32,207 nucleotides of DNA from Guillardia theta CCMP2712 (Eukaryota; Protista; Cryptophyta). The first letter of the stretch is position 1, and every line of letters begins with the position of its first letter. The stretch lies in the NCBI RefSeq assembly GCF_000315625.1, contig NW_005434541.1:49747-81953 (forward strand). The letters run 5' to 3'. The notes below the pieces were generated by a model. That model was given only the letters and a program-made list of their open reading frames with translations, ran no database searches and was not told the DNA's origin. Of this stretch, positions 6,271-11,714 are shown one piece after another. The translations under genes were made by a program, and so were the position numbers.

Positions 6271-6342
6271 GGACTTTTAGCCGAGATGATTGATTTTGTG
6301 AAACATCGAGTCTATTTACAACAAGATTGTGACTTCCTTGAA

Positions 6343-9300
6343 TCATATCCCTCGCGTGCTCTCAGCACGAAGAATCCTGTACAACTTGTGCATCTGCAGC
6401 AGGAGAGGAAGTGAGAGGAGGGGGAGAGGAGGGTAGGGGAGAGGGAGAGCCGGGAGGGAAGGCAGGAGGGGGAAAGGAGGGAGAGCGGAGGGCGTACAAG
6501 GGAGAACAAATACCTTGATCTTCATCTGGTGAATCTTCTTATCGTGTAGCTGTATCTCCCCGATGATCTTCATGCCGCAGTTGGTCGTGAACAGGACGCC
6601 GATGGTCAAGTCCCGGTAGCCCTCCTGCGACTCCGAGGCGATGAACTTGTTCTTCACCCGGCATACCTGCGGGCAGCGTGAGAGGGAGAAAGGCAGCAGC
6701 TCCGATCCGGACCTTGATCCCTGAAGACTCGTCGAGGCTGTTGAACCACTCGAAGATCTCGAGGATCTTCTTGGGCCCCTCGCAGATCACTGAGAGCCGG
6801 ACCTGCCATGGGCATCACTGACGTGCGGCCGGCCGATGGCGACGCGTCACCGGGTCCAAGATGTACCCGCTGTAGGGCCTGACGCAGCGCAGGAGAGGGT
6901 CCGCGTACTTAAAGAGCTTCTGGCTCATCCTCGCTAGCGACTTGACTGGAGCGAAGGACACCTCCACCCGTCTCACCCCTTCTTCGAATTTGCAGTCCAT
7001 GGTGATGGAATGGTGTAGGATGTCGTTGTGGTCGTCATCGAAGTCCACACAGATGGTACTCTGGTCTGAGGAGCCCAGGACCGCCTCCTCCCAGTGCACA
7101 GTCGGCTCCTTGTCATGGCTGCGTGTTCGACCCACCACCTCGTGCGACTGGATGACCTGGAGGACCCTCTTCTGAAAGGCGTGGTTGATCAGCTTCGCTC
7201 TGAGGTGGAGCTGCGATATGAACACATCTTCGTTGTGCACTCTGTACCCGCTGGGCGAAACCTGGATCATTTTGTTCTCTTCCTGATACAGCATTTCCTT
7301 GGCATCCTCTTCGTGCATGCGGATCGCCCCAACCTGCAAGCCCACGAGCGTCAGAGTCACTCCTGCTGCGCACGAGCTCATACAAACCTCATCGTCTGAT
7401 TGCTTGTACGGCGAGTATCTCCTGGGCGGGTCGTGCGAGTCCTGAAAGACGACGAGCTTTTCTCCTGCCGCTTCCTTCTGCATGTTCTGGAACCTCGTCT
7501 GGCAGTGCTGCCCCAGCATGGCCATGTGCTTTGATACCGCAGCCTTCAACTTGGGAAACAAGTTCAGCTCGTCATCATGCCAGATGTTGATCTTGGTAGC
7601 TTTCTCCAGGAAGAAGGCGAACCTCGTTTCAAAATCATCCAGACCCTCAGTAGACGACTTCTCGGGCGAGTCATCCGGCATCAGCATGGCTTCGCAGCAC
7701 CCGACAACGAAGTCTCCCAGCAGGTAATACCGCATCTGTTCGTCACTCACGACACTCTGCAACGAGCCTCCATGATCGTGACTGTGCTCGAACGACGACA
7801 GGTTCGAGACAGTCTCGGTCTCGGCCAGCGGATGGAAGATCGCCGAGCTCCTGAGCCAGCTGCACATCGCGTTCACGTACTTGAGCTCGAAGTCCTTGAC
7901 CAGGGCGAGCCTTGCAAGATGCTCCAACAATTGATAGTCAATGACCGTCATTCTCCTTCTAGTCAGAACGAACTTCCGGTACCGCACCTCCTTGCTCGTC
8001 AGGAACCCATCCCTCCTCGTGAGCTTCAGCTGATGCCGAATATGGTGGATCATCCTTATGATCTCCACGTCATGATCTTCAACTTCAGTGTTCTTGCAAC
8101 AGTAGTACCAACTCAACAAAGCAACGACGCAAAAGAAAGCAAAGATCAAAGTAGTCGAGAGTACGATGGCTAGCACCGTCTGGGAATTGCTGGTAGAAAT
8201 GCTGGGACAGCTCTTTTCAATGTTCGGGCCGTTCCCTCCAGGCCAGGTTAAGGCGACGTTGAGCCAGGTCTGTTGCGAAACTTCCCGCTGCACTAGATAT
8301 GTGATGGTTCCTGCCTCCCATTGCGCGACGGAAATAGTGCCGTTTTCGTTTGTGTTGACCAGATCATACCTGCAGTATAGAGGACAAACACAAGATCGTC
8401 AGCAGATGAAGGAAACGGATAAGGATAAGGATTAGGATTAGGATAAGGATAAGAGAAAGGAAGAGAAGAAGGCAGCGGCGGCGGCGGTGGAGATGATGGT
8501 GATGGTTACAGCGAAAATGGAGGGGGGAGGGGGAGTAGGAAGAGCAGGAGGAGCAGGAGAATCTGTCTCACTTTGCATCCGACGGGTCCAGCTCCCTATT
8601 GAAGGTGATCAGTCCTGAAGCTCCCTCGAACCGCAGGCTGCGAAAAGTTTCTACGATGGCGGGCACATTGAAGACGGACAACCCTTTCTTGATCATTGCG
8701 TCAAACGCACGTGCCACCGCATACGTGGCATCATAGGAAAGCACCAGGTATGGGTTCGTGAACACATTCGTCAGACCCGGATACTCGTTCGGGTCTAATC
8801 TTCCCCAGAAATTCTTCATCCGCGCGAACTGAGGATTGGTTTCGTTGAAACCAACCTTCATGCCGATGTACCCCACAGGCAAGCCCGATGCAAGGGAAGT
8901 GACGGACTCACTGCCCAGCCAAATGATCTTCCCAGAAGCACCGATGGCTTTCGCAGCATCGAAGAGCTCGAGTGCGTCGGTGTTGTGCATCGCCAAGATG
9001 TAGAGGCGCGTGTTGCTGCAGTTGTCGTACATCGTCTTCAGCAAGCTCTTGGTTCCCGAGGGATTTCCAAACTCCCAGAAGAACGTCTGCTCCACCACAA
9101 TGCCAAGTTCCTGACTTCTCTGCAGGAATCTCTCTGCAAGTCCAGTGCAATAGACATCTTGGCATCCAATCAGTTGACACCTTTGCCATTTGAAATGCGC
9201 CAGAACGTCTGCAATGGCCTGTCCTTGCAGATTGTCGGAGGGGCAGGTACGTGCAAAGTTGGGGAACCGGGTGATGTTGGAAAGCACATCACTTGTAGAG

Positions 9301-10976
9301 CTGTAGCTGATGTCGAACATGTCAAGTTGAAGATTCTTCATGGCAGTGAGGGTGAGGATGGTTTCCGAGCTGAAGCCGGGACCAACGACGGCCGTTGCAC
9401 CGTTGACTGACAGATTCTTCACTATCGTAGACATTGCATTCTGCCGCACTGACTGGAAGCTGCTGCCAGAAAGGAACCCGTTCTGAGCAATCGCTCGCAC
9501 TGCAGAAGTGTCTCCGATATCCAGCTGAAAGTCGATCCCTGACAAGAGAGTTTTGTCCTCATTGATCATCATCGCTGCGACCTTTGCAGCCGCCGCTGCT
9601 TGAGCATCAGCATATCCCTTGTTCCAGCTGACAACAAACATCCCTCCCAACACGATCTTTTGACAAACTCCAACAGCTCCGTCCTCTAACGCAGGTTCGC
9701 TGCTATGGAAAGTCAACCCCCCATGACTTGTCCAGGACCCAATGTTGATCAGAGTGTTGTTGCTGATCTTCTGCTCTATATTATACCGAGCATCTTTCGG
9801 ACCGAGATCACTGTTGAAAGCGACATATCCCGACACCCCGTAAAATTGTACTTCCAGGAATGCCTCCTTGAGTGCAGTTGTGTTGTCAACTGATTGATTC
9901 CGCTCAATCAACGTTTGAAAAGCATATGCTAGCGCAAAAACTGCATCATATGCTAGTGGAATATACGAGTAGCTCTCCCACATGTCCGCACTAGGAATGC
10001 TCACATTTCCAAACGCAGAGTTCGAAAGATGGATGGGACCCTGCGCCCACAATGACTTCAGCTCCTGCATTTTGGGACTGCTGTGATTCGAAGACATCTT
10101 CAACCCTATGTAATTCGGAGGAAGGTCCTTGGGAAGCAGACTGCTTACCCCCTCCCCTCCTATCCAGATAATCTTGTGCAACACGTTGAGCTCCTGGGCT
10201 GCTAGGAAGACATTGGTTGCTTCCACATCCGTCATCAACAAGACGAAAGTCTTCGAAGCCACACAACTGGCAACAGCCTTGCTCAGATTGGCTTTCACCC
10301 CACTTAGGTCTGACATGTACCACAGGTGCATGGTGTAGGCAATGTCCATCGCCTTGGCGTGCTGGGCAAACTTGGAAGAGAGACCAGAGCAGTATACGCT
10401 GGAGCAAGTGATGATTTGACAAGACGTCAACTCCAGTGACTTCACCAAGTCCGCTAGCGCCAGGCCTTGGTAGGAGTCTGGTGGGCAAATCTTCACGAGG
10501 TCTGGGAAGGTTGTTCGGTTCGAGAGCACGGGACTGGTCGTGCTGACCACCACGCTCAGCAGGTCGCGCTGGTCCAGGTAAGGACTCAGCGCTATCGCCT
10601 CCGAGCTGTAACCAGGACCGATCAGCGCCGTTGGCACACGCGGCATCCGGTCGATGGCATCAATGAGAGAGTTTTCCACGAGCAAGCTGAACTGTGCAGG
10701 AGACACAAGATCGTTTTCAACCAGCGTCCTGGTGACAGAGATGTCACTGATCTGCATCTTGAGCTTCGTTTGAGGTAGAATGTCATTTCTGCTGTTGATT
10801 ATGTCTACTGCTGCGAGAGTGGCCGCTGCAATATATCTCTCCCAGTATGACTCTGACCAATCCACCACAAATAGCCCGCCAATGGCGATCTCGCTCGGCG
10901 GTGAAAATGCGGCCGAGAGGGATGCCGAGAGCAAGAAGAAACAGAGAAAAAAATGCGAAAGCGCAGGTATCCACAT
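6343..10976 (-). CDS. Single-pass membrane receptor: signal peptide + 2 Venus-flytrap (ANF_receptor / PBP type 1) domains + TM + cytoplasmic linker + RelA/SpoT-like synthetase (nucleotidyltransferase-fold) domain; ~1387 aa
   Basis: Exons 10976-8572, 8369-7388, 7333-6851, 6802-6713, 6666-6514 and 6393-6343, all GT-AG, total 4164 nt and one open frame. The 7387-7334 intron is in-frame and inferred. Signal MWIPALSHFFLCFFLLSASLSA. VFT motifs occur twice: IGPGYSS/VGPGFSS, TSPVLSNRTTFP/TSDVLSNITRFP, PPDSYQG/PSDNLQG, AYDAVFALA/SYDATYAVA, FYGVSG/FEGASG. TM TVLAIVLSTTLIFAFFCVVALLSWYY at ~8179-8100. C-terminus reads PVKSLARMSQKL...ILDPVRLSVIC...RVKNKF...GYRDL...GEIQLH...HKLY. Confidence 0.88.
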
Positions 10977-11714
10977 GGTGGATGTGTGCTGTTTGCAAAG
11001 TTGAAACAAGGAGAAGATTCAAAGGTACGTGGAGAGCTCCGAGCCTTGAGCGCAAAGGGCAAGGCAGGAAATCTAACGATTTCGAACCCTTCGCCAAAAT
11101 TGAGCACCGATGAAATTCAATCGAGGGGAGTTGCTGTCAAATGCTGCAGATTTCTTTTTGCGCTACATGAGATACCGCCACCATCGATCGCAACCAAGGA
11201 CTACAATTCTCAGTTGTGACCATTGAGTAGGGCGTTCGTGTTACCGCCATGTACGTTTCAACCTTGCGTCTGCAACATCCTTATCATTCTACTCAACTTC
11301 TCCGCCGGTACAGGAAAGAAGGAACCACACATCCAGACAACCATGAGCTCGCTGTCACTGCTTCCGATCCATCTTCCCCGTGCCGCCCTGGTTCTTCCCA
11401 TTCCATGCCGCATCCTGATAAACTCCCCGGGTCTAATGATGGAGAAAACTTGGACCACCCCACCCTTTTATCTAATGTACCCTACCCTTGTACCCTTTTT
11501 GCACTGCACCCCTCGATTAACACCCCTTACATAATTTGTATGGGTCCTTCTGACTACCATGAGTCACTTCCCGATCCAGCACCCTTCCTATCCCCAGAGC
11601 CCACCCTACCGAATAAGTCCCTTGCCACCACCCACCCCTACAGCATGGCTATTCGGTACCCTCACCCCTCATGGTCCTTTTTCTGCACCTCACGGATGAT
11701 GGTAGACCAGAATC

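Follow-up and report, generated by a model that had tools for sequence, protein, structure and literature searches.

A divergent RelA/SpoT-type synthetase fold at the C-terminus of a predicted surface receptor family in the alga Guillardia theta

The window analyzed here is a 32,207-nucleotide stretch of the genome of the cryptophyte alga Guillardia theta CCMP2712 (assembly GCF_000315625.1, contig NW_005434541.1, positions 49,747 to 81,953 of the forward strand). On its minus strand, between positions 11009 and 6343, lies a gene for a receptor-like membrane protein, and the C-terminal domain of this protein is the subject of this report. Profile comparison and structural modelling establish that the domain has the SYNTH fold and is a remote RelA/SpoT homologue (RSH), even though it falls short of Pfam's own definition of that family. 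It is a very divergent member of the fold and, we predict, most likely still an enzyme. A first-pass annotation, made from the sequence alone, had picked out five peptides that recall synthetase motifs and had proposed that the product may not be ppGpp. All five peptides are present on the minus strand within 6343–6960; the observation is confirmed, and its interpretation is partly supported.

The window exons were searched separately, and paralogues from the same genome that carry the domain in a single exon (L010–L012) stood in for the joined window protein. Pfam and NCBIfam gave no RelA_SpoT match on the separate exons, plain phmmer and a five-sequence profile found no match among PDB sequences, a homologous-protein search with the large exon returned nothing (probably diluted by the non-conserved part), and the PADLOC and PHROGs models matched nothing meaningful. 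A profile search across 1.84 billion representative sequences collected 1,345 relatives. When the profile of a 46-sequence family alignment (A3, mean column identity about 33%) was compared with the PDB, the best sequence was RelP (6fgk, 'GTP pyrophosphokinase YwaC', E = 0.002), with K-S...K, the Asp, G-Y-R and E-I-Q paired at high posterior probability; the motif region of RelP aligned to exon 5 of the window gene reads KVKDYI...NGYRSLH...EIQIRT. L017, a sister type encoded by the same genome, has retained the canonical D-x4-R spacing; its only matches in the PDB were four small alarmone synthetase chains, and it is linked to the A3 family at 95% hhalign probability. On the sister type of contig C1, Pfam RelA_SpoT reached about 21 bits (E = 0.02).

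Structural comparison was carried out with an AlphaFold model of paralogue L012 (predicted local distance difference test, pLDDT, 89.4; predicted template-modelling score, pTM, 0.85). The top 50 Foldseek matches to this model were all RSH synthetases (best E = 1.1e-6). VIA gave RelQ as the closest structure (Z = 15.1, root-mean-square deviation 2.8 Å over 154 residues), followed by RelP (13.3–13.8), CapRel (12.6), an exported small alarmone synthetase (12.5), Rel (11.8), Tas1 (11.3) and the long RSHs (9–10), with FaRel2 at 8.0. The top 25 VIA entries were all RSH (Z = 15.1 to 9.2), and the first non-RSH fold was Pol mu/TdT at Z ≤ 8.4. An ESM Atlas shape search led to a cluster that is 100% PF04607 (template-modelling score 0.63), and the feature search agreed. 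The resemblance of the peptides to synthetase motifs is thus beyond chance by the RelP profile, Foldseek and VIA alike.

Reading the three minus-strand frames together with GT..AG borders gave four coding pieces for the synthetase-like domain; the gene has five introns in total. Exon 1 (8572..11009) encodes a signal-peptide-like start and two tandem ANF_receptor (Venus-flytrap) domains, and a 202-nt intron (8370..8571) links this ectodomain exon in frame to exon 2 (7388..8369), which holds the end of the ectodomain, one transmembrane helix and a juxtamembrane region. This intron and the following 54-nt intron (7334..7387, phase 0) are both absent from the X1 and X3 transcript contigs. The 54-nt intron is open in frame and hence invisible to the reading of open reading frames; it is revealed by the RNA contigs alone, and the first-pass annotation, whose region of interest begins just downstream, missed it.

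Exons 3 to 6 encode the synthetase-like domain. Exon 3 (6851..7333) starts with V-G-A-I-R, ends with I-L-D-P and supplies helix alpha1 and strand beta1; in all paralogues a splice acceptor lies at the same place, just before the conserved V-G-A-I-R. The exon contains the donor-phosphate motif P-V-K-S-L-A-R-M-S-Q-K (Lys 6943-6941, Arg 6931-6929, Lys 6919-6917) and, in I-L-D-P, the Mg-binding Asp (6856-6854). It is separated by a 48-nt intron with an in-frame TGA (6803..6850) from exon 4 (6713..6802), which encodes the beta2 strand V-R-L-S-V-I-C, with an invariant Arg at 6799-6797, and the next helix; in the paralogues, ILDPVR runs uninterrupted across the place of this intron. Beyond a 46-nt intron (6667..6712), exon 5 (6514..6666) starts with V-C-R-V-K-N-K-F and encodes beta3, the G-loop, beta4 and beta5 of the core, including R-V-K-N (equivalent to RxKD), G-Y-R-D (Tyr 6618-6616, Asp 6612-6610) and G-E-I-Q-L-H-D, whose catalytic Glu is at 6558-6556. 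The last intron (120 nt, 6394..6513) is CT-rich and open in frame. Exon 6 (6343..6393) consists of the last 16 codons (6393-6346) and a TGA stop (6345-6343); it starts with M-H-K-L-Y, and its H-x-x-Y motif (His 6390-6388, Tyr 6381-6379) aligns with MHRLYK of the single-exon paralogues. The protein ends ~14 residues past this motif, and no further domain lies there.

Expression data and paralogues agree on this structure. Transcript contigs from two studies (X1 and X3) splice out exactly the 120-, 46- and 48-nt introns, all with GT..AG borders, and a single 4,634-nt transcript record of X3 covers 6294–11100, from ectodomain to stop. Raw stranded RNA reads (X20) cross the same three junctions 7, 3 and 1 times, respectively, and none of the splice junctions was seen in the DNA-type run X13. 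The whole domain lies within one exon in L010, L011 and L012, and in L006 and L008 one exon holds all of it that precedes the last intron; placed head to tail, the four window exons match the single-exon paralogues with no missing or extra columns. The splice model is therefore correct, and the three junctions that the first-pass annotation had predicted within the synthetase domain are borne out. Contigs of three runs also match the window at only 6545–6569 and 6644–6663, with a diverged stretch of the same length in between and unrelated flanks; most simply, these are cross-matches from the conserved core exon of a paralogue.

From its N-terminus, the protein is laid out as a receptor, with a signal peptide, a pair of Venus-flytrap domains, a single membrane-spanning helix, the helical juxtamembrane region and, last, the synthetase-like domain. 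Pfam ANF_receptor (PF01094) matches exon 1 in two stretches at E = 5e-82, and the single hydrophobic helix of exon 2 spans about 8096–8176. Given a Venus-flytrap ectodomain, one helix and one mRNA, the synthetase-like domain forms the cytoplasmic C-terminus of a single-pass receptor. The juxtamembrane region (7388–8092, ~235 aa) is conserved across family members; its model (pLDDT 76.7) is largely helical and includes a disordered insert at residues 87–113. Compared with solved structures, this model showed no fold above background, the best matches being unrelated helical proteins at Z = 7.0. That it is a decayed HD hydrolase, as found in long RSHs, was rejected: the model gave no HD hydrolase match.

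The gene is one of many. In the G. theta CCMP2712 assembly (87 Mb, 669 contigs), core exon 5 has at least 14 paralogous matches, and the domain occurs in about 15 close and about 10 distant copies; one single-exon paralogue corresponds to XP_005839779 at 100% identity. Long relatives share the C-terminal domain and differ in their ectodomains, which are of ANF_receptor, CHASE, phosphonate-binding periplasmic or Ephrin_rec_like/NCD3G type. In one 573-aa relative from a JGI metagenome (P0148), a class III guanylate/adenylate cyclase domain (residues 220–414, Pfam E = 4.5e-43) is directly followed by the synthetase-like domain (residues 415–567), placing two nucleotide-converting outputs in one protein. 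Where relatives carry a taxonomic label, they are from cryptophytes (Hanusia, Cryptomonas); Atlas clusters labelled as ciliate or diatom lie nearby. Their database names are all 'hypothetical' or 'uncharacterized', and a precomputed Pfam domain is present on 0 of 64 relatives; this public annotation reflects the failure of standard domain models to see the domain. A pattern scan for close relatives across 185,579 bacterial and archaeal species genomes gave 30 matches, none of them confirmed, which is a weak negative.

We then examined which residues the family has kept. Conservation was counted in about 100–155 family representatives, with the window exons aligned separately, and residues of SaRelP were mapped through a HMMER alignment to B. 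subtilis RelP (numbering offset 20). In SaRelP, the adenine of ATP is stacked by R78 and R112, its phosphates are bound by K80, S84, K88 and R91, and Mg2+ is coordinated by D107 and E174; the G-loop residue Y151 stacks the acceptor base, and H190 touches the ribose (PMC5794853). At each of the 12 conserved family positions from K72 through Q169, the window gene agrees with the consensus. The catalytic centre is nearly invariant: D101 (99%) and E167 (100%) align with RelP D87 and E154, that is, with SaRelP D107 and E174, and the Gln of E-x-Q (Q169) is kept in 98%. The stacking Tyr (Y148) is Tyr in 84% and Phe in a further 5%, so the Asp, Glu and Tyr that the first-pass annotation had recognized are a property of the family and not only of this gene.

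The donor pocket is a mixture of retention and change. At the positions of SaRelP K80 and K88, Lys is found in 99% (K72) and 97% (K80 of the family). By contrast, the position of SaRelP S84 is Arg in 97% (R76), that of R78 is Pro in 70%, Ala in 8% and Arg in 5%, and that of R112 is Ser in 79%; the Gly of DxxGxR is replaced by Arg in 100% (R104). The position of R91 is Glu in 59% and Lys in 25%. The window gene has Lys, Lys, Arg, Pro, Ser, Arg and Lys at these seven positions, respectively. The canonical donor motif R-x-K-x-x-x-S-x-x-x-K plus D-x-x-G-x-R is thus not found in the family, apart from its two Lys and the Asp. To call the ATP-binding motif 'kept', as was done initially, was too generous: both Lys stand, but its first Arg is Pro, its Ser is Arg, and both residues that stack the donor adenine are absent at their canonical positions. 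Likewise, the proposed DxxxxR with shortened spacing holds for the Asp, whereas the canonical Arg is Ser and an Arg occurs two residues earlier. Change is therefore not confined to the acceptor site, as had been supposed; the donor pocket has been remodelled as well.

Two new residues accompany this remodelling. The near-invariant R76 and R104 lie close to the lost arginines, R76 in the first turn of the phosphate-binding helix and R104 on strand beta2, two residues before the canonical Arg position and hence, by strand alternation, on the same face of the sheet. Mutation of the canonical adenine-stacking pair strongly impairs Rel (bioRxiv 10.1101/670703), so the change in the family should be either compensated or consequential.

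On the acceptor side, the guanosine-specific set (K-D-Y-I..P-K-x-N-G-Y-x-S-x-H and E-I-Q-I-R-T) is likewise not found in the family. The R/K-x-K-D motif retains its Arg in 90% (R134) and its Lys in 95% (K136) and has Asn in 100% (N137), and reads R-V-K-N in the window gene. The aromatic residue of the G-loop is kept, with the family G-Y aligned to N-G-Y of RelP, and it is Tyr in the window gene; P-K-x-N is not conserved, and Asp or Gly precedes G-Y. The Ser of G-Y-x-S is Asp in 91% (D150), the His of G-Y-x-S-x-H is variable (Lys 37, Met 25, Ser 14, Gln 8 and Thr 7%), the Arg of EIQIR is His in 63%, Gln in 15% and Arg in 5%, and the Thr of EIQIRT is Asp in 82%; the window gene has Asp, Thr, His and Asp. 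The first-pass annotation had thus correctly read all three substitutions (Thr for the His, Asp for the Ser and His for the Arg), and the altered state is family-wide. The position of SaRelP H190 is His in 57% and in the window gene, at the same distance of 16 residues after the Glu.

What these replacements mean for the product can be stated only in part. The RxKD motif sets the preference for GTP or GDP, and its Arg and Lys were proposed to hold the acceptor phosphates (PMC2666561); retention of R-x-K favours a phosphate-bearing nucleotide as acceptor. Makers of (pp)pApp have differentially conserved motifs, and the tRNA-using toxSAS have no clear sequence signature (bioRxiv 10.1101/2021.04.30.441581). 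In the papers searched, we found no statement of what the canonical Ser and His of G-Y-x-S-x-H or the Arg of EIQIR do. Acceptor identity cannot be read from the sequence. Three features nevertheless give a weak hint of an adenosine-type or promiscuous product. One is the loss of the residues of guanosine enzymes. Another is the family spacing D101-P-V-R104: in SaEAS the ATP-contacting R124 lies three residues after D121 and is structurally equivalent to Tas1 R330 (PMC12691689), numbering that implies the same D-x-x-R spacing, as read from residue numbers. The third is that Tas1 has the highest sequence identity (22%) among the structural alignments of L012. On this evidence, we would rate (p)ppGpp as no more likely than an adenosine-type or promiscuous product. 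The family-wide replacement of acceptor residues bears out part of the first-pass interpretation; a product other than (p)ppGpp is plausible, a reasonable hypothesis and not a finding.

Taken together, these data suggest, with somewhat better than even confidence, a ligand-gated receptor with a divergent SYNTH output, both of whose pockets have been rebuilt, that is predicted to make a 3'-pyrophosphorylated purine nucleotide. In such an enzyme, two acidic residues, the Asp before beta2 and the Glu within the E-I-Q of beta5, would bind the Mg2+ that accompanies the nucleoside triphosphate donor, and the two Lys and the family-specific Arg on the first helix would hold the donor phosphates. The Tyr on the beta3-beta4 loop would stack the acceptor base, and the 3'-OH of the acceptor would take the pyrophosphate. 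The base- and phosphate-reading residues around this Tyr have been replaced, partly by conserved acidic ones, with R-x-K kept. Ligand binding outside would switch on synthesis of the nucleotide in the cytosol, an idea that comes from the parallel in design with receptor guanylyl cyclases. More specifically, and tentatively, the family might turn an extracellular small-molecule signal into a hyperphosphorylated nucleotide other than (p)ppGpp, either (pp)pApp or a mixture of A- and G-type products; we regard this narrower version as possible but doubtful.

Several observations weigh against this interpretation. Pfam RelA_SpoT (PF04607) matches 0 of 46 family members even at E ≤ 10 and misses the intact single-exon paralogues as well (gathering cut-off 27 bits). 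Both canonical adenine-stacking Arg are missing at their positions, and in light of the Rel mutants ATP may be bound at the donor site in some other manner or not be bound there. That the relocated Arg rebuild the adenine sandwich is a suggestion drawn from strand register only. The modelled protein is paralogue L012, which is ~45–50% identical to the window gene. The window gene itself has Arg at position 93 (about 6877-6875), where 94% of relatives have Trp as part of a near-invariant W-P pair; the Arg is real, since RNA contigs agree with the genome there. Lastly, ligand gating is suggested by the architecture, by analogy.

We considered four other explanations. That the motifs resemble those of synthetases by chance on an unrelated fold, or that the splice model is wrong, would agree with the lack of Pfam, NCBIfam or plain phmmer matches for exons and intact paralogues. 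This idea is refuted by the RelP profile match, by Foldseek and VIA (Z = 9–15 to 25 RSH entries ahead of any other fold), and by the RNA junctions and single-exon paralogues, and its probability is negligible. An ordinary (p)ppGpp synthetase is a more serious candidate. It shares its general mechanism with the interpretation above and differs in product alone: pyrophosphate from ATP would pass to GDP or GTP, and the substitutions would be drift in a tolerant pocket. The nearest solved structures (RelQ and RelP), the best sequence match (RelP), and the retained stacking Tyr, G-Y-R of the G-loop, E-x-Q and R-x-K of RxKD all speak for it, as does the use of GTP by RxKD-type enzymes (PMC2666561). 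On the other hand, the P-K-x-N and S-x-H that flank the Tyr and the R-T of EIQIRT are replaced family-wide, partly by Asp, and the D-x-x-R spacing is that implied by the numbering reported for the promiscuous SaEAS (D121/R124) rather than that of RelP (D107/R112) (PMC12691689, PMC5794853). Hydrolases are also scarce: the genome has only two HD_4 domains against about 25 genes with the synthetase-like domain, and both belong to canonical long RSH genes (C47:131263-132737 and C24:131220-132315), in which HD_4 and RelA_SpoT score above the Pfam cut-offs; no stand-alone Mesh1-type hydrolase was detected in the genome. This scarcity hints, weakly, against cytosolic (p)ppGpp. On balance we think an ordinary synthetase rather unlikely.

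A pseudoenzyme, in which the fold would serve the receptor for binding nucleotides or contacting other proteins and would transfer no pyrophosphate, would explain the loss of both adenine-stacking Arg, a divergence too great for Pfam, and the Ala in place of the Gln of E-x-Q in the distant paralogue L009. Dead enzymes, however, usually lose precisely their metal- and phosphate-binding residues. Here the metal-binding Asp and Glu are kept at 99–100% and the phosphate-binding Lys at 97–99% despite the low mean column identity of the family, and two new invariant Arg beside the lost ones look like compensation rather than decay, so we regard loss of activity as unlikely. Finally, the acceptor could be a macromolecule, with the 3' end of tRNA or another RNA pyrophosphorylated as by FaRel2, CapRel and PhRel2 and translation arrested as a result; the receptor would then act as a switch for defence or growth arrest instead of producing a diffusible messenger. 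CapRel is indeed among the top structural matches, motifs cannot exclude such an acceptor because tRNA-using toxSAS lack a clear signature (bioRxiv 10.1101/2021.04.30.441581), and expansion with fusion to many sensors, as seen in this family, is frequent among immune-type receptors. Yet no antitoxin-like domain is fused or adjacent, with the protein ending so soon after its last motif; PADLOC defence models do not match; the domain has only a mildly basic net charge (median +4), used here as a proxy for RNA binding; and small-molecule sensor ectodomains fit signalling better than pathogen sensing. These four points hint only weakly against an RNA acceptor. The retained acceptor-side R-x-K adds to them, and we consider a macromolecular acceptor improbable.

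Among characterized enzymes, RelQ (SAS1/YjbM) and RelP (SAS2/YwaC) of Firmicutes are the closest in structure. They share with the receptor family the fold, the five synthetase motifs in the same order and at the same spacing, both Mg ligands (Asp and Glu), the pair of Lys that bind phosphate, G-Y-R of the G-loop, E-x-Q and a His 16 residues after the Glu (E174/H190 in SaRelP). They differ in being free tetrameric enzymes, whereas the family domain is part of a membrane receptor of roughly 1,400 aa, and they have only about 14% identity to it. Their RxK becomes PxK in the family, the following Ser becomes Arg, DxxGxR becomes DPVR-x-S, KDYI..PK.NGYxSxH becomes KNKF....DGYRDx (the last position variable), and EIQIRT becomes EIQ(L/V/I)HD. 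Tas1/Apk1 and SaEAS, which are (p)ppApp-specific or promiscuous between A and G, have the same fold (Z = 11.3 and 12.5) and are bacterial toxins or secreted enzymes outside any receptor context; the shared D-x-x-R spacing is a lead only. The tRNA-pyrophosphorylating toxSAS FaRel2, CapRel and PhRel2 also share the SYNTH fold (Z = 8.0 for FaRel2 and 12.6 for CapRel). These enzymes keep the Asp, the Tyr and donor contacts of the R-x-K-x-x-x-S-x-x-x-K type (PMC11782079). FaRel2 has the canonical D90...R95 spacing and R64 (PMC11782079), neither of which occurs in the receptor family, and the window protein contains neither the antitoxin nor the fused pseudo-zinc-finger domain of toxSAS systems, in keeping with the absence of a PADLOC match.

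Eukaryotic genes with an RSH synthetase domain have been described before, as plastid RSH1-4/CRSH of plants and algae and as the small synthetases divRel/FunRel (PMC3153485). Those proteins are soluble or organellar and are found by standard models, whereas the domain of the receptor family is missed by such models, sits on the cytoplasmic side of a plasma-membrane-type receptor and is expanded. In RSH surveys, small synthetases of eukaryotes are listed only for fungi, Dictyostelium and diatoms ('divRel'/'FunRel') (PMC3153485), and neither of two surveys (PMC3153485 and bioRxiv 10.1101/575399) mentions a transmembrane or receptor-linked RSH. Literature searches for an alarmone synthetase linked to a receptor, to cryptophytes or to Guillardia yielded no relevant paper. 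In overall logic the nearest parallel is with receptor guanylyl cyclases, which have a Venus-flytrap domain outside, one helix, a regulatory region and a C-terminal nucleotide-converting enzyme. Their output is a cyclase and here it is an RSH-type fold, so the likeness is one of design and not of homologous outputs, and the kinase-homology domain of those cyclases is not present in the window juxtamembrane region.

A number of further features were noted in the genome. Paralogues of the domain often come in near-identical pairs, inverted or in tandem, with distances from a few kb up to 16 kb between the two copies, on C80 (110447/127118), C47 (5613-6177/20144-20747), C206 (46675-49191/54499-57015) and C1 (834103/840553), which suggests recent local duplications; between L006 and L007 there are only about 3 differences in 200 residues. 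The sister types L017 and L018 (C1:841129-844425 and 834679-837975) lie in long open reading frames of other architectures with hydrophobic segments downstream, and L018, like L017, keeps the canonical D-x4-R spacing. The locus of L009 (C81), the paralogue with Ala for the Gln of E-x-Q, also contains long poly-Ser tracts and an assembly gap. In the window itself, about 1001–2000 contains an assembly gap of 962 N, which accounts for an apparent drop in GC to 0.18 there.

RSH synthetases are known as stress enzymes of bacteria and plastids and as bacterial toxins; in this alga, the same catalytic fold stands at the output end of ligand-binding surface receptors, in a family that has expanded. 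Which residues were retained and which were relocated amounts to a natural experiment on donor and acceptor choice by RSH enzymes, a choice poorly understood even for the bacterial enzymes, and also marks out targets for mutagenesis: the catalytic Asp and Glu, the stacking Tyr, both relocated Arg, and the Asp conserved behind G-Y-R. Provided that the domain is active, extracellular sensing would be tied directly to an alarmone-type nucleotide in the eukaryotic cytosol. If, in addition, the product is other than (p)ppGpp, the family would represent a second-messenger system not yet described in eukaryotes.

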